Source: Klebsormidium nitens (Eukaryota; Plantae; Klebsormidiophyceae). From it: DNA of 56,452 bases. The notes beneath the pieces were generated by a model. That model ran no database searches. It worked only from the letters and a program-made list of their open reading frames with translations, and had not been told where the DNA came from. The position numbers and the translations under genes were made by a program. The DNA is taken from positions 1 to 56,452 of the forward strand of contig DF237531.1 of the NCBI GenBank assembly GCA_000708835.1. Direction: 5' to 3'. Shown in pieces: positions 5,401 through 56,452 of the stretch (positions are counted from its first letter, which is position 1; every line of letters starts with the position of its first letter).

Positions 5401-8400
5401 CTGGGAATTTCGCCGACAGTCCGTGAGTATTGAGTGCGGCGTGCAAGGGCGAGGACGTCATCTCCTGGGAAGCTGCTTCTCACCGCTGTAGAGGCAGGTC
5501 TGATGCCCTCATGGACAGATCAGAGAGATCGATCCGAGAAGATCAGGTGCCTCCGGCTCGAAGCCTGCTGTGAAAGAAAACGCTACATAAGATTGAAGGA
5601 AGAGGGATCCTGAAAGTCCTTCCTCGTAGTTTCCAAAGATGTTTGACGTTGCTTCTGTTCCGGCGCAAAGAATCGACTGATCCGGCGAGCGGAAGGCACG
5701 CCTTTGTAAATGAAGGTCCTTGAATGAAACGCTGAGTATACGCGCATCAAGCTTAAGGATCAACGAGGTCAATAAGCAGAAATCAGTGTTGTGCTTGTAT
5801 GGAGCGTCGGCAATAAAACAACCCTATTGCGAGGTAAGGATGACCTGTGTTCTGAGCATCTCTTTTCTCAAGCGTTCCTTGCGGGTCCAGATGCCCCTGT
5901 GAAACCGGCTTTTCGTTTAAGAAAGGTCTTATGTGTCCCCTGTGTCCATTACCTTTCCCTGCCCTTGATATTGTTTTGCTCCGCCAAAAAGGTCGAGTCT
6001 TGGGGCGGCTCGGTATGGTTCACTTGACCCGTAGCACGTAACCATCGAACGACCAGCTGAAAGGTTCATCTGTTTTCGAGTCCCCGTTGCTAAGTGTTTG
6101 CTTGTCGACATCTCCATCTTTTGCGGAACATGGTTGGCTTGATTGCTCTGTCTCCCTCGCTTCTTCAAAAGGCCTCGGTCAATGGAGGCGCTCTCAGCAC
6201 TCACTGGCAATATGCTTGACGCTATGTCACAAGCTCAGTACGAGTCATTTGTTCAAGCACCTTGCCCCTCCGAACCTGTTGATAGAATCGTCGCTTATTC
6301 TGATTGCACTTCTCTGGTTCTTGAGATTTAAGGGGCAGCGGACGAGGCATTTCGCTGATGACCAAGCTGGTGGCAGTGGCAGCACATGCCGACCATCTGA
6401 TAACCTAGACGGAGTTTCAGGCGGAGCCGTAATCATAGGGACAGTATCCGGCTTCTACGGCAGCGTCTGAAGTGCTGTTGCCCCGGTCTTCGCTTCTAGC
6501 ACGTTTGGAAATGTCGAGCGGTTGCAGTTTTTGTAGCGTTAAAGTCGACTGAGGAATATGATTCTCAAGAGGACTAAGATGTAGCTGATGCGTCCCTGTT
6601 TTCGCCGGTTGCCAAAGTGGTTAAGCGACTTGAAATTGTGCTGATGTGAAACTGTGAAGCTAAACGGGCGGTGATGCAAGCCGTCTGAGAAAAACTCTCA
6701 ATGGGCTATTTGCAGGGAAGCTGACGCCTTTTCTCAATAATGGAGGCCCGTCGGTGTTGCTATTTGATCTGAATAGATTTTTGTCATCTTCGCATGTCTT
6801 TTGTCATCTTAGAACTGGCGCGGATGCATGCCTCCTGAGATACCACTCGTTCGATGCAAAAGGGGAGGTCCGTGTTCTGTCTAGAAAACCTTTTTGGCCT
6901 GACCTTGTTTAAATGAGGAACATTCGTGCCAGTCTGCTTTTGGTGAGGACGAGTTTCATGAGACACAGGACTGAAAAACCCTAGCCCACAGTGGACCGTT
7001 CTCGATCCCGTATCAGGCGCTCAATCCCCCATCAAATTCAAAAATAAGATGCTGGGTTCTACTGCAATCTGGCGTTTCCTACGTTTGTGCCAAGATTATT
7101 GGGCGAGGATACGAGGTTTCGTGAGTCATAGACTCCGCAAGCTCACTCACCTTTGACGCCTTGGTCGCTCTGGCCTTATGTCAATTTATTCAATCTTATC
7201 TGGCTGTCCCGTGTCCGCCGTTGATTGTCCATGTGGCAAATTCGCGAGTCTGCAGATCACGTTGTTTTCCGGCACTCAATGACGAAGGTGTGAATGACAA
7301 AGATGTGAATCTCTCTCGCAGGTTGACGGCCTGTACACCGGCCCTCCCAGCGACAAGTCGAGCGAGCTCATTCACACCTACATCCGGGAGCTGCACCACG
7401 AGCAAGTGACGTTTGGTGAGAAGTCCCGCGTCGGGCGTGGAGGGATGACCGCGAAGATCGACGCGGCGTGGCTGTCAGCGAAATCAGGGGTTCCAGTCGT
7501 CATCGCAAACGGGGGGGTGGCTGACGTGGTGTCCAAGGTGAGAAAGCAGGGGGAGGAAATGATTTACTTCAGAACGTCACTTTTAGGTTGACTAGTGAGA
7601 CTGCTTCAGAGAAACAGCAAGTTTTCTGTAACTGATGATGGCCTGTGGAATCATTTGTGGACCATAAAGAAGAATGCGGCTAGAGGTGCACGCAACATGG
7701 TATCCCAATGCTGTTCGGGAGTGCCGACTCTGCTCCTGTGTTTGCCCGGAGCAGACTTTCTGCCATTTTGGAGAATGTCGTTCGACCTTACCTAGTAGCC
7801 TTGACTGGCTCATTCCTGACTTCTAGGCTTCTGTTCGATTTTCGAAGAGATTCAGACTGAGCTCAGTACCCAACGGACAGCAAAGCAATTGCTCTCACTT
7901 GACGGATTTGATCGCTTGCAGTCGACTAAGTTACTGAAAGAGAGAGGTTCTTATAATCTTTTCGTCGCCCAGATAGACAACTGTTTTTGCGTATCCTGCA
8001 GGTCATGAACGGCGACCACATTGGTACGTTAATACACCGCGACGCCGCCAAGTGGGACCACTCACACACAAAGGGGTCCGACATCGGGAAGTCACGCGAC
8101 GCAGCGGTGGCGGCCCGGACTGCCTCTCGAAAACTTCAGGTGAGGAAGAAACAATCTATTTCGTTCGGCTCCCTTCGTTTGATTCAAAAGGTGGGAACGA
8201 GGAGCTGTCCGCGAAGGTAAGGGACTGAATGGTCTAGGCACCATAAACTCAAGCTGACCCCAGACAGACCAGAAACGTAGCTGGCATACCTTCTGTGCTT
8301 CTGTTCTGCAGACGCTGACGTCATTGAAACGTAGCCAGATTCAGCTGGGCTTTGTCGATGCTTCGAGGGTCAGCTTCTGGGGGAGACGGTTTGGGCGCTC

Positions 8401-11400
8401 GCAAATCTCAAAACTCAACTTTCTCGTTGGGAAAACCTGCGCTGATAAGCTATGTGAGCTTCTCTTGCAGGCCCTGACGTCAGCAGACCGCAGCCAGATA
8501 ATGGACGTTAGGGACGCTTTGGTGGAGAACGACAAGTTGAATCTCAAGGAGAACGGTTTGGTCTCCCGCAAATATCTGAAGCTAACGCCGTTTCACTCCA
8601 CGTTCATAAACTTTCCTGACTATGTAGCTTGGTTCCCACGCAGGCCCTGACGTCAGCGGAGCGCAGCCAAATCTTGTTGGACGTTGCGGACGCTTTGGTG
8701 AAGAACGAGGAGCTGATTCTCAAGGAGAACGGTTTGGACGTCCAGCAGGCGCAGGCGTCCGACACGCCCAACGCGCTCCTGCAACGGCTCAAGCTCAAGC
8801 CCGGCAAGGTGAAGATCAATCTTTCAGCCCGTTTCCGAAAAACTTCGCATAAACCCGAAGGCTCCAAGCCTGTTCTCTGAAGATTATGATCGACTGGCGC
8901 CGGAACGTGTTGGATTAGAAGACATTGTCACGATAGAGGTCCGTTTGAATCTCTGTGGATTGGCCAACTAGCAGCGGGGTTCGCTCCATCGCCCCAATGG
9001 ACGGACCCATGCCCTTGCGCTGACAGAAGATGGAGCTCGCCGAAGATCTGAGCCGAGAAACAAAAGATGCCGGATGGCGTTGTCCTCTGTGATGGAAACC
9101 CGTAAATCTTTCTCTGTAGATCGCCCAACTAGCGGCGGGGATCCGCTCCATCGCCGCAATGGACGAGCCCGTTTCTCAGCTCCAAAAGAAGATGGAGCTA
9201 GCCGAAGGTCTGGTCCTCGAAAAGCGAACGGCATCGCTAGGCGTGCTTTTGGTCATCTTCGAGTCGCGCCCCGACGCCCTTCCTCAGATCGCGTCGCTCG
9301 CGATCCGGAGCGGGAACGGGCTGCTGCTGAAGGGAGGCAAGGAGGCTGCACGATCAAACGCGATTCTTCATAAAGTGGGTTTGCCTTGTCCTTAAAGCCT
9401 TTCGGCTCCATAATCTCCAGGTTTAAGGGTTGTAGCATCAGGTGTTTTCTGAGCCAAGTCCAGATGCTCTGCTGCAGAACGCTTTGCTCGCAATCTGCAT
9501 TGGAAACCGGGCTGTTGCAGACGGGAGGCAAAAGGCAGCCTGCTCGAATGCAGTCCCTGGAGGCTTGTTTGCGGTGTACATGGTCCTATCTTTCATCGTG
9601 TAGTCTCTTCTCCGGTCTCTCGCATACAGTCAAGGTCTACTTTGCCCCACCCACACGTGCTGCCCAGTTGGTTGAAAGCCGTCAGAAGTAGAGATGGGGA
9701 GCTACTTAGATTTTGATCATCCAGAACGCCATGACGGGATGCCTGCACTTGCGCTGGGGGTTAATTGGACCCTCAGCATCTGTCGCTCGGCCAAGGACAT
9801 CAGTCACTGAAAAGAGCCGGTCTTTAGGCTGTACGTCCTGCTGATGTCGCAAGCTGACGTCAGCCGAATTTCACGTGCAGATCATCACAGAGGCACTCCC
9901 ACCTTCAGTTGGCCCGCACCTGATCGGCCTGGTGACGTCACGGGAGGGCATTGCAGACCTGCTTAAGGTGAGGCAGCGAGACGGCGTCCGGGGCGATCCC
10001 TTCCGGTTCGGTTGCTTGTCTGTTTGGAAGGCTGCTGGCGCCCCTGCCACTGGAAGATTTGTGCGGATTCACCGTGAAATCAGCACAAAAAAGCTCTCTC
10101 CAATTTTGTGTAACTGGATGACGTCACCGATTTCGTCATTCTCCACCGCGGCAATGGCCTGCTGATGCACACCCGCTTTCGAGAAACCAAGGAGAGAGAA
10201 GAGATACCAAGAAGAGATAGAACTGAGTCACGAATGTTTTGCATCGCTGCAATTGGATAACGTTATCAACCTCGTGATCCACCCCGGCAGCAATGCCCTG
10301 GTGACGCACATTAAGGAGATCATAAAAGACTACTTTGAGCGTCCGCTTTCAAACAACACGACGAAAGAGCTAAAACACATACTCTTTCGGATCGCTGCAG
10401 TTGGATGACCTCATTGACTTCGTGTACCCCTGCGGCGGCAATGCCTTGGTGACGCACATCAAGAAAAACACTAAAGACCACTATGAGCGTCCGCTTTCAA
10501 ACACCAGAAGAGAAGATATCATGGAGAGAGCTAAACTGCGTATTTACTACATAATTGCAGTTGGATAACGTCATCGACCTCGTTTCCCCCGCGGCGGCAA
10601 CGCCCTGGTGACGCACATCAAGGAGAACACCAAGGTCACATCAGGCCATCGCTTCAACCCTCTTTTACGAAGGAAAACTGAACCAGTTTTAAGCCGCATC
10701 TTTGACAGTTGGATGACGTCATCGACCTCGTCATCCCCCGCGGCGGCAACGCCCTGGTGACGCACATCAAGGAGAACACCAAGATCGCGGTGCTGGGACA
10801 CGCGGACGGGGTGTGCCACGTGTACGTCGACAAGGCTGCTGACGTGGACATGGCGAAGAAGGTGGTGGTCGACGCGAAGATCGATTACCCGGCCGCGTGC
10901 AACGCGATGGAGACGCTGCTTGTGCACGAGGATCTGGCGAAGGGAAAGGAATTCAATCAAATTTTGGATGCGCTTAAGATCGCAGGTGCGTTCTCTGTCC
11001 GCAGTGCACATTCGTTTCTTACTTTTTTGGGTTCTGTTAAGACGTAATTTTTTTTGGCTTTCTTTCTATCATAGAGCCTTTTGCAATGAGACACCGCTTG
11101 TGCATGAGGACTTGGCGGAGGGCATGGAAGTGAACAAGATCCTGGATGCGCTCGAGATCGCAGGTGCGTCCTTTGTCCGCGAGTGAATCTATTTTCTTAT
11201 TCTTTTAGTGCTCTTTTTGTGCTCTTTAGAAGGTGATGAAGCTTTTTTGTACTGACGCGCGTGTGCATGAGGCTCTGGCCATGGGCAAGGAAGTGATGGA
11301 ATAAGATCCTAGATGCGCTTAGATCGGAGGTGCGTGGGTATAGGATCCGTTGTTTCAGATTGGTCTTATGTCCCTTTTCTTTCGTTTATCTCTAGGAGAG

Positions 11401-44150: not shown

Positions 44151-44737
44151 AGAGGTTCGAGGCGGCGTCACATGAGGGCATGCCCGCCCCAAACCTTGAA
44201 GCCCTTGACGAGTAGATGTCGACAAAGTGCGGCCGCGCGCGATTCCGTTACCATACAAGAAAGTTATGAGGACTTGAAGGTGCTCAGCAGCTCATTTCTG
44301 GATATTGCTGACACAGTTTTGGCCTTACCTGATCCTGCGAACGCCCCAAACCGAAGGGAGGCCAGCACATCGTAAGCAAGCCTGGCAGAGCCGAGGATCT
44401 TCGACGGACAAAGTGACGTGAAGCGCGGAGCAACACCGAGTACAAGAAGAAGTTGCCGACATCAAGATTACTTTCAGAGATCCGGACTTTTGAGTTCTCA
44501 AGTGCAGGGGGCAGTCTTTGCACAGCCATTCACAATCGCTTAAGTTGGTGAACAACAGGCCCGGCGTGCACAATGCCCTCGCTCTCTCCGGAAATACCCA
44601 CACGGAGAATTAATGCGCACCGCACGTCCACCTGCTCTTTAACAAAACCCGTCCCATCCTAGCACCTTCTCCTTGTTGCCCATTGTCCTCAGCGTTTCAC
44701 TGCATCGATCAAACCAATGGGAACTACTCACTCGCAC

Positions 44738-47340
44738 ATCCAGCAGTGCTAGCCGTTTGCAGCCCTGCGCTAGCGCCATCAGCCCTTCTCCGTCCAGGTG
44801 CTCATTTCCGCTGACGTCAACGTTCTCGAGGTTCGGACAACGCACGGCTAGCGTCCGGAAGTCCTCGGCCCGCAGGGGGCAGTCGCTGATGTCAAGCTGA
44901 CGCAAGGTCGGGCATGGCAACCCGGAGTCGAGTCTGATGAGGAAGTCATTGCGAAACAGCATCAGCTTCTCTAGCTTTTCGCATCCGTCGAGGACCTGCA
45001 GATAGAGATCCGTTTCAGAGAGGGCGTCCGCGGATGCATTCGTTATTGGCGACCATGAGTTTGGACCCTGTAGTAGTGGATTCAAGGGTAGTCTTTTGCC
45101 ATATCGAGGACGCAATGAAAGCTAGGCGGGTTCCTTGACAAACTAACGCCCACGCAACCACGTCACAGCCACCTGTACGGAAGGGCAAAGAGGGTGAGCG
45201 GTTTGATTACCCTCTGGCGGAGGCATGGCTGGTCTTACAGCTGGTGACTCGTCGAAGGTTTCCAGTTCGACAAGTGGGACTCTTTTGACTTCACGGGCGA
45301 ACATTACTAGAACAAATTTTCGGTGCCGTTGGGGAGCTTCGGTTTTGACCAGACATATGCTTGAAAACCTCAAGTCAAAGTATCTCCGATGTGTTGTTTC
45401 CTTCCTTGATGCTTCTTCCAGAATTGCATCCTGTTGCTGGCTCGCAAAGATTTCACAGAAATGCAAGCGAAATGCGAGCAGATCAAATGAACGCTGCGTT
45501 TCCACCTGGCCAGCTTGACATGCTCATAACCGTAAGAGGCATGCCTTCGCTATTTTCGGCACGTTTCAGAGCAAACAGGCTTGGTTGTAACAAAAGCACG
45601 GAGAATGAACACACGATTGGAAGGAGACGAGCATCAAGCCAGTAGATCTCGTTGACGAAAATCTTGAGGCAAATGATTCATAATGGAACTGCGATCAAGT
45701 ACTCATAGAAGGTAGACGCCCGGATTCATGAGCGACGAATAGAGGATGGAGACGCAAAGTTCGTGGAGCCAAAAAGTGTCCACATACGCTTTTAGGAAAC
45801 CAGGTACCGAGGGAAGGACAAGAGGGAAAACGGGGCTCAGGGACATTCTATAATTGGACGGTGCGAGGTGTGACTCACATCGGATAAGGCGACTCCGCTC
45901 ATGCAGAAGCCGGCGCCCGCCTCGAGTGATGTCAGAGCGGAGCAATGCAGCGCAATCGAATTCATGGTGCCATTGCCCACGTAGTCGCACTCACTGATGG
46001 CGAGCGTGTGCAGTTTTGGCCAGGGAGCGCCTGGGAAGTGAAGAAGAGTGAGTTCTGTTGAAAGGGACTGTTGTGATTCCCAAGAGGGACTTCAAGTTGC
46101 TTCGTGCGAGGCATAAGGGCTCATCAAATATTCGTTTGCAGCCAAGCTGGGGCAAACATTGAGGGATCTTGGAAAAGGCTATAAGCTCCTGGCGGCAATT
46201 CGGAAAGTTCGATTGCGTCATTGGAAACGGTCGTGTTTCTGGGTTGCGTGATTGTGGGTTGATCACGGCTTGTGTTGTCAACCTGGGGCCTTGTGATTAC
46301 TGAAGATTAGCCATGTGGGCTGGATGGAAGGTGCGGTTGGGCAGCTTTTATTCCCCCCGCCGGTTTTGTTGAGAGGAATACGTACTTGTCAAAACAGAAG
46401 CTCTCTTCGAACAGGCAAGGCGTTAAACAATACCAAGCCGATAAACGGAGCGAGCAAGCAACAAGCCCACCTTTTAGGAATGCCTTTTTGCGCAGGTTTC
46501 CCAACCCAGCTCTCTGGATCACGAGCTCCTCCAACTGCCCGCCTCTCAACTTTCCGAGCGACCGCAGTCCCTTGTCCGTCACGCGATCACACCCGCTGAT
46601 TCTGAGAACTTTGAGAGCGACGCCGGCCCTTGCTATTGCCTTGAGACTGCGATTGTTCAGTTCTGCGCACTCCAGCAGGTCAAGTCGGGTTAACGCTGAC
46701 CACGATCCCTCGCTAAGGCACACGTTCCACGGCACGTCTGGCTCCATCTTGCATTGGGTCAGGTCAAGCTGAACCAACGACTTTGAAAACCTTCCCGCAT
46801 TTTCCGGAACCACTCCCGGCTCAGCGTGTTCCCAGAGAGGTTTACCGAAGTCAGCTTCGTGCACTGCGCCAGCACGTGCGCAATGCCTGCTGACGTCAGA
46901 CCCCCCGCGGTGCTGACGTCATGCGCTGAGGTCACTTTTAGGCATGCAAGGGTCAGCTCCGTCAACCCCGGGCAGCGCCGCGCGACATTTAGCAAACCCG
47001 CGTCTGACACACCCTCGCAGAACGACAAATCGAGCGTAGTCAGGGTCCGGGCGCAGGGGGCTGACGTCAGCCCGTCCAAGCCGTGATCCGAAAGTTCGGT
47101 GGGCGCCCCGCAGTCGTGCAGCAAAAGCGCCCGCAGCTTTGTGCACGAATGCGCAATCCCCGTGACGGCCGAATCGAGATTCCAGGCGTCACTTTGACTG
47201 CCACTTTCCCCGCTTCCAAACGCACACTCGCGTGACTTCTTCCCGGACTCTCTTTTCCCCACTTCATCCAGCATCTCCGCAGACGCGGCGAGGAAAAACA
47301 TCAGCGCGTTGGTTCCAGTTGGTTGGCTTTGATTGGTCAA
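44738..47340 (-). CDS. RNI-like/F-box-LRR-type leucine-rich repeat protein, partial model, with a 1-nt frameshift at 46786-46789
   Basis: Exons (-) ~47274-46471, 46030-45879, 44995-44738. Cys-containing LRRs LTTLDLSFCEGVSDAGL, LKVLRISGCDRVTDKGL, LHTLAISECDYV, LRQLDISDC, LENVDVSGN. First and last exons unresolved; no F-box seen. Confidence 0.72.
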
Positions 47341-50264: not shown

Positions 50265-50680
50265 TTTCTGAAATTCATTCAGACTTCATTCAGGATCCTT
50301 CTGAATCCTGAATGTCTGGACCGGGGGACTGGGCCTTGGATCCGTGGGTTTGGTTAAGTTAAAGTATGGTCGGTCCGAGGTAACCGGGGGGGGCAGCCAC
50401 CGGAGGGGTTTCAGAAATTCAGGGTTCAGGAGAACCCTGAATGAACCCCGAATGAATATTCAAGGGGCATTCATTCGGGGTTCATTCAGGGTTCTTCTGA
50501 ACCCTGAACTTCTGAACCGAGGCCCCGCGGGGCCCGGACCGTCCCCCTGCGGCCACCGTGGGTTTCCAGAAATTCAGGGTTCAGGAGAACCCTGAATGAA
50601 CCCTGAATGAATATTCAAAGAGCGTTCACATTCGGGGTTCATTCAGGGTACGTTCTCCTGAACCCTGAACATCTGAACTG
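50265..50680. repeat. Tandem array of long hairpins (155-bp period, 48-bp arms) built from TTCAGGG/CCCTGAA motifs
   Basis: Unit 1 arms 50410-50457 and 50469-50516 pair at 46/48. Unit 2 spans 50565-50678. A degenerate right arm lies at 50268-50318. Confidence 0.9.
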
Positions 50681-50746
50681 AGGCCCCGGGGCCGGACCGT
50701 CGCCTGGGGCCATGGTTTGCATTTTGGTACCCGGGCCTGTTGTGAC

Positions 50747-51214
50747 NNNNNNNNNNNNNNNNNNNNNNNNNNNNNNNNNNNNNNNNNNNNNNNNNNNNNN
50801 NNNNNNNNNNNNNNNNNNNNNNNNNNNNNNNNNNNNNNNNNNNNNNNNNNNNNNNNNNNNNNNNNNNNNNNNNNNNNNNNNNNNNNNNNNNNNNNNNNNN
50901 NNNNNNNNNNNNNNNNNNNNNNNNNNNNNNNNNNNNNNNNNNNNNNNNNNNNNNNNNNNNNNNNNNNNNNNNNNNNNNNNNNNNNNNNNNNNNNNNNNNN
51001 NNNNNNNNNNNNNNNNNNNNNNNNNNNNNNNNNNNNNNNNNNNNNNNNNNNNNNNNNNNNNNNNNNNNNNNNNNNNNNNNNNNNNNNNNNNNNNNNNNNN
51101 NNNNNNNNNNNNNNNNNNNNNNNNNNNNNNNNNNNNNNNNNNNNNNNNNNNNNNNNNNNNNNNNNNNNNNNNNNNNNNNNNNNNNNNNNNNNNNNNNNNN
51201 NNNNNNNNNNNNNN
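50747..51214. other. Assembly gap (468 N)
   Basis: Run of N. Confidence 1.
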
Positions 51215-51272
51215 GCCCGCCTCCACCCGTCTTGTGTCTGCGATGCAGTCCAAGACCCATCAGAAAAGATCA

Positions 51273-54036
51273 CTACGTGCCGTAACCTTTTGTGAGCGCC
51301 CCTAGGAGCTCGGTGGTGATAAGGTTGTTTCGTTCGCAAGAGTGAAGAAGCCGGATTACGTCTTTGGTGGTTTTAAAGTGAGATCCTTTCGTGTTTCCTG
51401 TTGAGGGCTTGTTTGCCATGTTGTCTGGCTTGCTGAGCCAGCGAACGTTGTCAATTGTGTAGTGTCTAAGCGGATCTTTGCGGTCGAGTTGATATTCTGA
51501 TGAAGATTCGAGGGGCCAAAGTGGTAGCGCTCCGAGAAGAAGGTCGATGACGTAAGCGAATGCGAAGAAGGCATATTTATCCCGTTGACTTGAGATTTTG
51601 CCTTTTGGCATGTAGAAACCCTTCCACGCGAACGTAAGTCTTGTGGTCGCGTACGCACTGTCAAAGTGAACCCGGTTAATCAAAGACTCCCATTTCTCGT
51701 AAATGGGGTGATCCGTGTTCTTGACAACCATTTTTTTACCGTTCTTGTACTCTCTCAGTTTCAGAGGGCACATGTTGTAGACCGATGATTTGTATTTCAG
51801 GAGGCAAGTATCCAGGTTGGTAAGTGCGTTCTGTGTAAATGTGATGAATTGTGAAATGAGTGGAACGGAGGGATTTTTATACACGTCGGTGGCGTATAGG
51901 AATTTCGTGACGAGATAGTGTACCTGACTCGGGAGTTGGTCGTTTTGTACCAGTCCTCCGTCGGGTGCAGTGGTCAGGTCAGAATTGGAAACCGATGTCA
52001 CAGCGCGTGTCTGTGACTGTGTGAAGAAGAGTTTGCGAAAGCGCTTAGGTGCTTTTTTCAGTACGGAATTGCGTGGTGAACACGAGCCCCCGTGTGGTAG
52101 GCTGACCACAGAAGAGACGTTCGAGACTGCTCCGTCCTTGACAAAGGATGGATCGACTGGAAAAGTCATGTAACAAGTCAAGAAGAACGCGTGGATGTCG
52201 TTCGACTTAGAAAGACCTAAGGATTGCAGCGTTGCGACATCCGAAGAAAATCTTGTGATGGGCCGATTGCTGTATAGGTCCAAGCAAATCTGACTGCCTG
52301 CGAATTCGACTGGACGAGAGTACATTGCTGTCAGAATGACCAGCAAACCTTCAGTTGCTTTTTCCGAGGGAGTTTCAGAATTGAGATCAATTAGTAGACG
52401 TGTGTTTGAAGAGATTTCAAACATACTACGATAAAGAGATTCAAGGGGAGAGAGTTTACTTTCGTTCTCGTCGCGCAGGGAGCGGTTCTCTTCCTGCATG
52501 CTGCCCATGGCCGACTGGAGCGACCGCATCTGGTCCTCTTTTTCATGCTGCGCCTGCATCAGCTTGGCCACGTCCTCTTGCAGCGACTGAGTGAGTAGGG
52601 AAAGTCTGTGCGTCTCATCATTCTGTCCCTTCTGTGCGTTCTCTTGCACAAGAGCCTGAAAGTTCACGGCAGGGATATTGCCGGGAGTCTGTTGAGTTTG
52701 GCTGTTGGGGCGGGCTGCGTCCGTTTTGGCACCCGCGGCTTCGGGGTTAGGATTCGGTGCGGTCAGCTGCGTGGGCTTGGCCGTGTTCTCGAGAGGGGGA
52801 GGATTCGCGATCGGGGGGGGGGGTTGGCTTGTTTCTGACCCCGGATTCAGCTGGGTTTGTTTCTCCGTAGGCTCCAGGGGTTTCATTGACCTGGGCCTGC
52901 CACTCCTTGTGTCTCGCGAACGCCTTCGATTGACGAACTGCTTCTCTGGCTTCCGTGTGGCCCAGGAGGCACTTGGTGTCAAAAACGCACTTCTCTTTGG
53001 GGGTGTGGAAAGCTGGGCACGGCCTTTCCGCCTTGGGTGCATGCGAGAATTTGCACGCCGGGTCGGGGCATGGTTTGTCCTGAGCCGTGTTCACACAGAG
53101 TTGTGTGAACTCGCCCTTCACGGTGGTGAAGTAGGGCATCACCTGCTGCCTGAGGACGGGGGGTTTCGGCTGCGGTTTGTCGTACGGTGTGCCCGGTTGG
53201 GCGCGGTTGCTGCCGTTCTTCGGGGTCTGCACACGAGGGTGGTTACGGATTGGACCGACCGGGTTACTGTTCATCCCGGGTGGGTTTCGAGGGTTCTGCC
53301 ATGCGCCTGGTCCGTTTCTCTGCGCTGGTGTGAACTGGTTTGAGTAAGAGGGCCTCCCGGGTGGATTCTGCGGTGGCGGGGTATAGGACGGGTTAGGACC
53401 TGGGTTGACTGGTTGGACCGGGTACAGTTCAGTTCTCTGGGCTTGCGGAATTGCGTTACGACCCCAGGTTGGTGGTCCGCTCAGGTTCCCGGTGGATCCG
53501 TGTCCAGGGTTTTGCCATGTCGATTCCGTTCCCCATCCCTGGGGTTGGTTTCCCCAGGAGTGGTTGGGTTTGTGGTAACCGTTGTCCGGAGGGTTAAGGG
53601 GTGGGTTGGTGTAGGTAACCGGGGGAGGGGCCGGATGCTGTGCTCCGTGGGGGGGGGTAGGATTGGCTCGGGGGGGGCGGCCGGGGGTTGGTAAGGAGGG
53701 GGAGCGGAGAAGTTATACGTTGGTTGGGGGGGCGCGTTAGCCGGTGGGGGAGGTCCAATGACGTTGGGGTAACCCTGTGCCTGTGGCGCAGGATATTGCG
53801 CCACAGTGAAGGGTCCCTGCTGGGGAGGGGCTGGGGCTGGGGGGGGTGGGAGAATGGGTTGTGGTGCTGGCTGAGCCGCGACCGTCGGAGCCGCGAATGT
53901 TTGAGCGTAGACGAAGGTTGTTGTCGGCTGTGGAGGACGGTGCGGCGGGGATCGGCGCGGATGGCGGGGGCTGTTGTTGCTGAAACGGTGACGTCATCAT
54001 TGCGTAGGCTGGAGTCGCGTACGTGTAGGGCAGCAT
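51273..54036 (-). CDS. ORF2 of the retroelement (~920 aa if three homopolymer frameshifts are corrected): Pro/Gln-rich N-terminus, 2x CCCH zinc finger, coiled coil, C-terminal HNH-like nuclease
   Basis: Joins ORF pieces 54036-~53945, ~53945-~53670, ~53670-~52820 and 52820-51273. Fingers C-x8-C-x4-C-x3-H and C-x9-C-x5-C-x3-H at 53096-52957. HPIYEKW...LDRKDPLRHYTIDNVRWLSKPDNMANK at ~51710-51410. Confidence 0.7.
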
Positions 54037-54067: not shown

Positions 54068-56176
54068 TCACAGGTTAAGTTTTTGCTTAAGAGTATATTG
54101 GAAAATGAGTTCAAGGTCTTTCTTGTTACCCATGAGTCTCGGATTGTAAACCTGGGTGTTGAGAAAGCGGGAAAAGGTGAATATCAGTTCGTTTGTAGGA
54201 TAGTGTTTATACTTGATTAGATAAGCTGCAACTTCAGCAACGTTTTCGAAGAAGCCTTCCGAGTGTGTATTCAATCGGAAGAGCCGTACAATTTCTCCGT
54301 AGAAGGAAGAGATTGATTGAGCCCTGCAGACATTAGAGGCGACGTCAGGGAACCGGTTAACAAAGAAGTTGTAGTTTTCTCGTTTGTCATGAAGTGTGAC
54401 ATGTACGTTGCCCTGGAGGTCGACGTAGATCAAAGTGTCCAGCAACTTGCACTGCAAGATACGATCTGGATGTGGTTTTACTTTGTTAGGGATCAGTCGA
54501 ATGCCTGATTCTGGGGGATAGATGTCCTGGTACATGGTTTGGAAGTATTCAGCGTTTGCTGAGCCGAAGTCATCCATGTACCTGAAAATAGAGTATTGCA
54601 GAGAATGCCATGGGTACTTTTCGACCCATTTCCGTTCGTGCGCATGGCATGTGAGATTAGCGAGAAAACCGCTTGAGTGCCCTCCTTGGGGAATCCCGTT
54701 GACCTGATGGAAGAGAGCATTTCCTAAGCTGACGTAGGAATTCTTCACCAGGAATTCAAGTAGGTTTAGGATGTTCTGGATAGGATAAACCACACCTTTA
54801 CTGCAATATTCCTTTTCGCTAGGAAGAGATTTGGTGGTCGGGTCAAGGCCTGACTCAGAATCAAACCAGGTTCCGTTGTCTATGTTGTTGCCTAGACTGG
54901 TGTCGCCTATGGCTATGAAGAAAGAGTCTGCACCCACGATGTTGGCTGCCCGTATTATTTCTTCCTGAACTTGAGCTATTACGTTCTGCTGGTCCATTTT
55001 CTGGTACATTGAATCGATGTCCGATGAGAACATGTTGACCAGGCATTCAGGAAGTGAGAGAATAATATCAAGACTGTTTTCGACTATCCAATATTTTCGA
55101 ATCCTGGTTGCTTTGAATTCGGCTTCATGAAAAGTTCGAAGACTTTGCATGACGAGTGAAAGAGCTTCGGTGAGGATTCGTTGAGGGAGATTAAAAATGG
55201 AGCGATGGGTGGCGGCGACTGGCCGCCAGCCCATTGGAGTTTTATGTGGTTTAGGCAGCGTATAAAAGTACGGGACTTCATCTGTTTCGTTTCGGAGAAG
55301 CGCTTCCAGGTGAGTGTGATGAATTAAGCCTGAGATTTGGTTCGCGAGAGAGGCGACCAGATCGTCTTTTGAGGTGTTGAGTCGTGTATACTCTGGAGCG
55401 TTATGTAACGTGATGATACATTGCTTAATATAGAGATTTTTACAGATGACGTAGTAGTTTCCCCTGCATTTATCTGCTGGGAGGATTACATACTTCTGTA
55501 GGAACGAGTCTAGTTCTTGTTGATGTTCTGCAATTCTGCCGGGAGCTGGGAATAAGAGAGAGTTAAGGTTCATTTCCTTGTTCGTATTCTTCTGTAGCAA
55601 GTCTTTCACGTTGTCGTCAAAACGTGAGAGAAACTTTCTGATCCATCTGTGGGCATCAGGGTTTCGTTTACGGTTCACGAGCTCAGTGAAGGCATCTTTC
55701 AAGGCTTCCCGTGCCAGTTTGGAGTCTCCGTTTGTAGTCTCTCTAAACATTGGACCTCGTTTGAGCCTGTCTAGGATGGTTGGGTTCGAGATAATAGCTT
55801 CCAGGTTGCCACTTGCCAAGTGACCTTCAAAGCGAGATTCGTGAATATGTTCTTTCTGACAGTGACATGCTTCGGTGTAAGCATGAAACTGTGGGATTAT
55901 GTGATCTGTCCATAGGTTGAAGTCAACTCCGTCCAGAGTTGCTTTGTACTGTGATTGGTTAAGTTTTTGCGGTGGCTCAGGATAGAGCCATCTAATCTGA
56001 AGATTTTCATAAGGACATAGGTAATCTAACTCTGATTTGATCTTTCTGATGTCTATGAGATTGAACCATTGGTTTACAAACGGGACAAGTAACCATGGTG
56101 AGTTTGGATCGGTAGCTTTCCGATCCGACTGATAGTATAAGAGTTTATCTCTTTGAGTGCATTGAAACTTTTCCAT
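54068..56176 (-). CDS. Penelope-like reverse transcriptase, 702 aa, no endonuclease domain in this ORF
   Basis: RT motifs YTLPKPHK..MGWRPVAA, FSSDIDSMYQ, QVNGIPQGGHSSGFLANL and FRYMDD (54580-54569). PLE-like thumb LLDTLI..HDKR..RFP..S..GEIVRLFR..YP. N-terminal linker PFVNQ..LIDI..I, CHC (55867-55859) and GH.ASGNL.II.N..L.RGP.FRE, as in N-terminal-EN (Naiad/Chlamys) PLEs. Confidence 0.9.
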   Translation of the reverse strand: MEKFQCTQRDKLLYYQSDRKATDPNSPWLLVPFVNQWFNLIDIRKIKSELDYLCPYENLQIRWLYPEPPQKLNQSQYKATLDGVDFNLWTDHIIPQFHAYTEACHCQKEHIHESRFEGHLASGNLEAIISNPTILDRLKRGPMFRETTNGDSKLAREALKDAFTELVNRKRNPDAHRWIRKFLSRFDDNVKDLLQKNTNKEMNLNSLLFPAPGRIAEHQQELDSFLQKYVILPADKCRGNYYVICKNLYIKQCIITLHNAPEYTRLNTSKDDLVASLANQISGLIHHTHLEALLRNETDEVPYFYTLPKPHKTPMGWRPVAATHRSIFNLPQRILTEALSLVMQSLRTFHEAEFKATRIRKYWIVENSLDIILSLPECLVNMFSSDIDSMYQKMDQQNVIAQVQEEIIRAANIVGADSFFIAIGDTSLGNNIDNGTWFDSESGLDPTTKSLPSEKEYCSKGVVYPIQNILNLLEFLVKNSYVSLGNALFHQVNGIPQGGHSSGFLANLTCHAHERKWVEKYPWHSLQYSIFRYMDDFGSANAEYFQTMYQDIYPPESGIRLIPNKVKPHPDRILQCKLLDTLIYVDLQGNVHVTLHDKRENYNFFVNRFPDVASNVCRAQSISSFYGEIVRLFRLNTHSEGFFENVAEVAAYLIKYKHYPTNELIFTFSRFLNTQVYNPRLMGNKKDLELIFQYTLKQKLNL

Positions 56177-56452
56177 TGGATCAGCATGCTTTGAGAGAAG
56201 CAGAATTAATGTTCAAACCTTAGTGAGTAGGTTAGGACTAACCTCTTACTGAAGGCTGAGATCAGAGGAGAGTGACTGAGGTCTTCTTGTGATGAAGAAC
56301 TCTCCAGAAGATTCCCAGCAGTTTGGAGTCTTCGGCTGAGGTGGTAGACAGAGTCCAGGACAGTGAAGACTGTTGAGAGGAAGAGGGACTGCCGTCTATC
56401 TGAGGAGAGGTAGAAGCAACAAACAGTTAGGTTTCTGTTGTTGAGTGAAGAG

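Follow-up and report, generated by a model that had tools for sequence, protein, structure and literature searches.

A Penelope-like element of Klebsormidium nitens combining a CxC-type reverse transcriptase without a detectable GIY-YIG domain and a second gene with a putative HNH-like domain

The element in the window and its reverse transcriptase

The last part of a 56,452-bp stretch of the Klebsormidium nitens genome (GenBank assembly GCA_000708835.1, contig DF237531.1, positions 1 to 56,452; hereafter the window) harbors, on its reverse strand, a copy of a retroelement with two genes. An intact open reading frame (ORF) for a reverse transcriptase (RT) is followed at a distance of 31 nt by a second coding region, ORF2, and by a set of short conserved features at the 3′ end (Table 1). 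Judged by its motifs (DKC, D386, GIPQGG and YMDD) and by its closest distant kin, which are GIY-YIG-linked RTs, the first gene encodes an RT of the Penelope-like elements (PLEs), the class of retroelements closest to telomerase. Together with its relatives, the copy very probably represents a lineage of two-gene PLEs in which a CxC-type RT without GIY-YIG is accompanied by an ORF2 with an HNH-like domain. On sequence evidence, this lineage is present in Klebsormidium as well as in other eukaryotes represented by metagenome and read-archive assemblies.

Table 1. Features of the element copy in the window
Feature	Position	Strand	Remarks
5′ leader, cut by the window end	56177..56452	-	aligns with the leaders of L001-L005
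Splice-donor-like AG/GTTAGT, conserved	56237-56244	-	invariant in six leaders
In-frame TGA, 13 codons upstream of the RT ATG	56213-56215	-	
Pyrimidine tract and AG	56189-56202	-	in the leader
Out-of-frame upstream ATG	56185-56187	-	in the leader
RT ORF, intact, 702 aa and stop	54068..56176	-	uninterrupted reading frame
Linker region, residues 26-146: WLLVPFVNQ..LIDI, IRWLYP, CxC, GH..SGNL, RGPMFRE	55739..56101	-	alignment
RT core	54569..55474	-	invariant columns in alignment A3
DKC motif	55466-55474	-	in the RT core
RT motif A, Asp386	55019-55021	-	
RT motif B, GIPQGG	54680-54697	-	
RT motif C, YMDD	54569-54580	-	
ORF2 region: Pro/Gln-rich part, CCCH-like fingers, coiled coil, C-terminal HNH-like domain	51273..54036	-	
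ORF2 pieces, four ORFs alternating between two frames	54036-53737, 53804-53481, 53274-52747, 53042-51273	-	
HNH-like C-terminal domain of ORF2	51276..51869	-	PHROG profile matches
Invariant D-R..H-Y...N.R-W........N core	51411-51485	-	in the HNH-like domain
3′ end of the internal region: CTGATGGG, hairpin GTCTTG...CAAGAC, G-rich motif	51215..51272	-	
G-rich motif GGGTGGAGGCGGG	51216-51228	-	
Assembly gap (N run)	50747..51214	.	starts where the 3′ direct repeat (pseudo-long terminal repeat) is expected, by L001/L003

General domain resources recognize the RT poorly. Pfam reports RVT_1 alone, below threshold and restricted to motifs B and C (E 1.2e-4), the window RT as a single-sequence query finds no match in the PDB, and the ESM Atlas returns unnamed streptophyte and rotifer clusters only. 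The catalytic core itself is well defined by the invariant columns D235, K236, G494, P496, G498, D535 and D536 of alignment A3. Motifs A and B are separated by 108 aa in the window RT versus a median of 84 for the relatives with a nuclease, a comparison within the RT set of the tree described below. A word-index search detected 14 close relatives with identities of 57-76%, three of which (P0001, P0003 and P0004) are full length with 702, 703 and 706 aa and share the start codon of the window RT. The PF28514 (DUF8422) family occurs in the precomputed Pfam matches of the close relatives P0005, P0006, P0007, P0010 and P0011; it is absent from the Pfam version scanned here, so that a newer release of Pfam seems to include a portion of these RTs as a domain of unknown function.

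Between subfamilies, dN of the RT ORF amounts to 0.17-0.27 while synonymous sites are saturated, which indicates that the ORF is under strong purifying selection. An intact ORF under purifying selection might also be expected from an immobile host gene derived from an RT. However, many diverged copies exist per sample, some of them truncated, and flanking direct repeats, head-to-tail units and a frame-split partner gene in the window copy are likewise difficult to combine with a host gene, so that this explanation is hardly credible.

The linker in front of the RT core ties the protein to RTs with an N-terminal nuclease. Residues 26-146 match the stretch between GIY-YIG and RT of P0132, P0081, P0102, P0109, P0130, P0087 and P0055. 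A preliminary description of the locus, made from its letters, had assigned the RT to the Naiad/Chlamys type with a CxC linker, and this assignment agrees with the alignment, in which CxC is invariant. The linker motifs given there are also present, namely PFVNQ from residue 32, LIDI at residues 40-43, CHC as C104-H105-C106 (positions 55859-55867) and GH..SGNL..N..RGPMFRE at residues 118-146, while the number of residues ahead of them is 31 and not about 28. Because C104, C106, H119, G141 and R145 are invariant across 15 proteins including seven GIY-YIG-bearing relatives, these motifs are not the product of chance. CxC occurs in 79 of the 83 RTs used for the tree described below.

An exhaustive HMMER search yielded 1480 relatives of the RT, and the longer proteins among the best 150 matches were inspected. 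N-terminal extensions of 140-445 residues are found in 46 of them. Pfam detects GIY-YIG above its cutoff in the extensions of P0132, P0102, P0109, P0081, P0062, P0122 and P0089 and below the cutoff in P0130, and an iterative search seeded on P0132 identified a GIY-YIG domain of the P0132 type in all 46 extensions. A domain homologous to a GIY-YIG confirmed by Pfam stands at the N-terminus of 49 of the longer matches. No C-terminal nuclease was found among the proteins inspected. Since the 46 relatives have their GIY-YIG at the N-terminus and none of those examined has a nuclease at the C-terminus, the nearest distant relatives are, by domain order, of the permuted Naiad/Chlamys architecture. 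The window RT stops just past the thumb, as stated in the preliminary description, and so do its relatives, with a C-terminal overhang of about zero in nearly all of those examined. Four have longer tails, none of which is a nuclease; these are ubiquitin hydrolase (UCH) domains in P0102, P0122 and P0140 and 54 unexplained residues in P0089. The UCH domains stand behind the RT of nuclease-bearing proteins (E 1.6e-29 to 4.3e-10) and recall a Josephin-like protease tail which a Chara Chlamys family is said to possess.

Absence of GIY-YIG and the 5′ leader

The search for a missed nuclease included the window and nine of ten loci with related copies (L001-L010). A profile from the 46 GIY-YIG domains of the relatives was run with all filters off against the six-frame stop-to-stop pieces of at least 20 residues from the window and L001-L009 (3381-3982 pieces). 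It found no match in any frame of these sequences, the best E-values of 4.5-5.3 being noise, and tblastn with the 46 nuclease pieces detected no GIY-YIG in the same set (best E 0.097). Both searches are blank for 56177-56452 as well, in accordance with the preliminary reading of its frames. In the relatives, 1.5-10 kb of upstream DNA are covered, comprising 1.9 kb of the element in L001 and 6.8-10 kb in L003 and L004; the 5′ repeats of 1.5-1.9 kb are part of the sequence searched. In addition, two contigs repeat their own starts at their ends (1-136 equals 5372-5507 in L008, and 1-80 equals 5816-5895 in L009), so that a complete unit of 5371 bp or 5815 bp, respectively, is contained in each. 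Such self-closing contigs point to head-to-tail arrays or circular DNA as the source of the assembled sequence. Because GIY-YIG is missing from relatives with ample upstream DNA and from two complete units, and because start and length of the RT are conserved, its absence is, at the level of sequence, a property of the lineage and neither an artefact of the window edge nor a quirk of a single copy.

Between the RT ATG and the window edge there are 276 nt, and an exon beyond this edge, carrying GIY-YIG and spliced to the RT, has to be considered. Besides the position of the edge, a conserved donor-like AG/GTYAGT in the leader and the N-terminal exon reported for PLE-X proteins (PMC8557442) would be in favor of it. 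However, the relatives with 1.5-10 kb of upstream sequence and the two complete units are devoid of GIY-YIG, and the RT start and length are conserved among them. The leader itself, of which about 280 nt can be aligned among six copies (the window and L001, L002, L003, L004 and L005), has stops in every frame and no frame open across all copies, and in the window leader the donor-like site is not preceded by any ATG. The in-frame TGA noted in the preliminary description was found at its place, and the in-frame upstream GIY-YIG exon against which that description had cautioned did not appear, the leader being non-coding and the upstream DNA of the relatives blank. We thus regard a spliced upstream exon as very improbable.

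The leader shows several conserved features of its own. AG/GTYAGT, invariant in the six diverged leaders, precedes the RT ATG by 44-110 nt, and it is followed on its 3′ side by a pyrimidine tract with AG and then by a conserved upstream ATG. These sites are located at 56185-56244 on the reverse strand of the window, at 7900-8000 in L001 and at 200-278 in L002, and they are also found in L003, L004 and L005. In L002 and L003, the upstream ATG opens a mini-ORF of four codons, the TGA of which shares bases with the start codon of the RT (ATGA). By their sequence, the leader features could constitute an intron in the 5′-untranslated region together with an element of translational control.

The second gene and the ends of the unit

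A gene homologous to ORF2 is located beside the RT in L001, L002, L003, L006, L007 (from assembly GCA_003358065.1), L008 and L009. A neighbouring gene with a C-terminus homologous to that of the window ORF2 is present in all five sampled nuclease-less lineages, the Klebsormidium family included, down to an RT identity of 24%. Within this sampling, ORF2 is inherited along with the RT in each nuclease-less lineage. In the distant relative L008, the stop codon of the RT overlaps the start of ORF2 as TGATG (5440-5444), an arrangement typical of coupling by termination and reinitiation.

In the window, the last 589 aa of ORF2, comprising the coiled coil and the HNH-like C-terminal domain, form an open frame with an ATG of its own. 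Across six aligned sequences, the C-terminal domain has 16 invariant columns, including N51, H54, P55, R66, D129, R130, H136, Y137, N141, R143, W144 and N153. All six domains match HNH endonuclease families of the PHROG collection (best E 2.8e-10); phrog_3377, 374 and 8790 are each matched by all six, and family 2081 is also among the families matched. These profile matches support the view that the domain is kin to phage HNH nucleases.

The box CTGATG(A/G)G, then a hairpin and then the G-rich motif GGGTGG(A/T)GG(C/T)GGG are found behind the stop codon of ORF2. The G-rich motif occurs once each, at the equivalent position, in the window, L001, L003 and L010, and the stem of the hairpin varies in sequence between subfamilies while its pairing is kept. 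The equivalent 3′ features lie at 12748-12812 in L001, 14895-14961 in L003 and 7650-7722 in L010. The box resembles half of a hammerhead core, and a hammerhead ribozyme was therefore considered from CTGATGAG and the stem after the ORF2 stop. It was rejected, as the GAAA part is lacking and Rfam is blank on 301 bases, without a hammerhead match at the gathering score or at E<=1.

The pseudo-long terminal repeats, left to be defined by the preliminary description, could be mapped in two loci as direct repeats with sharp ends, at 6075-7570 and 12813-14844 in L001 and at 8390-9756 and 14962-16345 in L003. They measure 1.4-2 kb, the sequence past each of their ends is unrelated, and the 3′ repeat begins right after the hairpin and the G-rich motif. 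In L001, the G-rich motif ends with GTC precisely where the 3′ direct repeat begins, and GGGG(G)TC occurs at a similar distance in L007 and L008. A reading of the repeats as those of a long terminal repeat retrotransposon was rejected since TG..CA ends and a target duplication are missing and the RT is of PLE type; inspection by eye also revealed no tRNA-type primer site.

In the window, the assembly gap starts behind the 3′ features, and the sequence ends about where the 5′ repeat of the copy should end. We infer that the assembly broke down at both repeats that flank this copy. With the 5′ side off the window edge and the 3′ side in the gap, an interstitial position cannot be read from this copy, contrary to what the preliminary description had proposed. 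Its other statement, that host genes adjoin the element, is consistent with three ORFs at 44639-47340 on the reverse strand, 4-7 kb from the element, which match leucine-rich-repeat families (LRR_6, LRR_4) and are probably exons of a host gene of this type. Past the gap, positions 50281-50746 contain direct and inverted repeats of about 160 bp rich in TTCAGGG/CCCTGAA, with nine of the 16 occurrences of this sequence in the window. This cluster either belongs to the 3′ repeat that is missing from the assembly or represents a palindromic element unrelated to it.

Phylogenetic position and a candidate route of insertion

An unrooted tree of 83 RTs, with SH-aLRT values as support, separates the nuclease-less RTs by a single branch (SH-aLRT 97) from all nuclease-bearing RTs. 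The nuclease-less side consists of five branches, the Klebsormidium family and P0015, P0020, P0021 and P0050, whose identities to the window RT (first row of alignment A3) are 45%, 31%, 30% and 24%, respectively. In a subset of 44 rows, the split is supported with 98-99 and a single change of state is sufficient. The trees include 35-49 nuclease-bearing RTs, and the midpoint root lies between them and the nuclease-less group. According to these trees, the nuclease-less RTs thus make up a single group with good support, separate from every nuclease-bearing RT sampled. Two routes to an outgroup gave no usable sequence: a profile word-search based on 25 diverse RTs yielded close kin only, and in the PDB the RT profile had weak matches, all of them to group II and retron-type RTs and none to a telomerase reverse transcriptase.

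With one group on each side of an unrooted tree, loss of GIY-YIG and its primary absence each need one change. The preliminary description had proposed a loss of GIY-YIG with replacement by the HNH of ORF2; the native absence of the nuclease and an HNH-like ORF2 are borne out by the data presented here, whereas the word loss finds no support in an unrooted tree. It is solely the published precedent that makes a loss in this lineage somewhat probable. This precedent is given by the PLE-X families of Chara braunii and Selaginella, which possess CxC and lack GIY-YIG, and which nest among nuclease-bearing Chlamys elements beside a Physarum family, a position read as secondary loss (PMC8557442). 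Alternatively, the lineage may never have had GIY-YIG and may descend from a nuclease-less CxC ancestor, with the fusion restricted to the sister group Naiad/Chlamys and an independent recruitment of the HNH-like ORF2. The single branch between nuclease-less and all 35-49 nuclease-bearing RTs, with the midpoint root on it, and the lack of any nuclease relic in the N-terminus or the leader are in line with this alternative. The nesting of PLE-X argues against it, as does the alignment of the first ~25 residues to an internal stretch of nuclease-bearing proteins; neither point is decisive, and primary absence is a possibility to be taken seriously, if not the one we prefer.

Whichever way the state arose, the Klebsormidium elements share a number of traits with Naiad and Chlamys (PMC8557442). 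These include CxC with the surrounding linker, a DK motif with a variable third residue, apparently the long spacing between motifs A and B, the end at the thumb, the absence of a canonical hammerhead and the flanking direct repeats (seen in L001 and L003), and Naiad/Chlamys-type proteins are the best-scoring distant relatives of the window RT. In contrast to these elements, the Klebsormidium unit is devoid of GIY-YIG and has a second gene with an HNH-like domain, its direct repeats have fixed ends, microsatellite targets were not seen, and the RTs form a separate group. Compared by published description, PLE-X resembles the new lineage in its streptophyte host, in the presence of CxC and in the absence of GIY-YIG. 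However, PLE-X is described as having hammerhead ribozymes of the canonical kind and an N-terminal exon that carries CxCX1-8C and is set apart by an intron (PMC8557442), whereas neither a hammerhead nor an N-terminal exon was found here; ORF2 is present in the new lineage, and neither ORF2 nor HNH is mentioned in the description of PLE-X (PMC8557442). The Athena and Coprina elements also encode PLE-type RTs without a nuclease domain. They are characterized by long N-termini, hammerheads, reverse-complement telomeric repeats and a location at chromosome ends (PMC8557442), unlike the Klebsormidium lineage with its CxC linker, which lacks a ribozyme match and telomeric repeats. With phage-type HNH endonucleases, finally, the ORF2 C-terminus has the matches to PHROG families 3377, 374, 2081 and 8790 in common; it differs from them in belonging to a eukaryotic retroelement, in being fused behind fingers and a coiled coil, and in going undetected by Pfam and the PDB. 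A paper that links PLEs with HNH was not found in the literature searched, although one may exist elsewhere.

Several observations weigh against a two-gene lineage that uses an HNH-like nuclease. Pfam finds no domain at the ORF2 C-terminus, a PDB search with this domain gave no match, and the structure predicted from the six-sequence alignment is unusably poor (pLDDT 47.8). The candidates for a catalytic triad, D129-R130, H136, N141 and N153, are invariant, and the structural model is too poor to judge the fold. By eye, and against the phage-type HNH motif, an invariant Arg occupies what we take to be the position of the first consensus His, and a new invariant His presumably stands six residues past this Arg. 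Because of this replacement, the domain could bind rather than cut DNA. Furthermore, ORF2 is frame-split in the window copy while L002 has a single ORF of 864 aa; the splits reflect either real frameshifts or assembly errors in a C-rich stretch, and with an intact RT and a split ORF2 the window copy may be non-autonomous. Neither end of this copy was assembled, and no target-site duplication is visible at L001 and L003, the only loci with readable repeat ends. P0050, finally, is a long branch of less certain placement, for which its ORF2 supports membership in the group.

A part of these points could be explained if the element had no nuclease of its own, inserted at breaks or chromosome ends, and used ORF2 for nucleic-acid binding only, with an HNH-like fold that is catalytically dead. 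The Arg at the usual place of the first His, in our reading by eye, the lack of Pfam and PDB matches and the lack of target-site duplications would fit such a protein. On the other hand, no telomeric or (CA)n repeats were found in the window or the ten loci, and L001, L003 and L010 lie inside contigs beside other genes. The 16 invariant residues (including H54, D129, H136, N141 and N153) have been kept over deep divergence, which fits an active site and a binding surface equally well. On balance, we consider such an insertion without a nuclease of its own not very likely.

We therefore return to the two-gene lineage of a CxC-type RT, which starts ~25 residues ahead of the conserved linker, and an HNH-like ORF2. 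In such an element, RT and ORF2 would both be translated from a single RNA, which the ORF2 protein may bind via its fingers and coiled coil. The HNH-like domain would then nick or hold chromosomal DNA and supply a 3′-OH, from which the RT could start target-primed reverse transcription. In this way, the HNH-like domain would take the role that the fused GIY-YIG has in the relatives.

How CxC elements without a nuclease insert genome-wide has been described as something that remains to be seen (Craig et al. 2021, PMC8557442). For such elements, the HNH-like domain of ORF2 is a concrete candidate for the insertion function. To our knowledge, GIY-YIG has been the sole nuclease known from PLEs so far. 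As a tentative and rather speculative extension, CxC-type PLE RTs might have split early into a branch with GIY-YIG fused ahead of the RT and a branch with a separate HNH-like protein. If this were true, the nuclease modules of PLEs would be interchangeable add-ons to a nuclease-less ancestor, and a testable answer would be at hand to how nuclease-less CxC elements such as PLE-X insert inside chromosomes.

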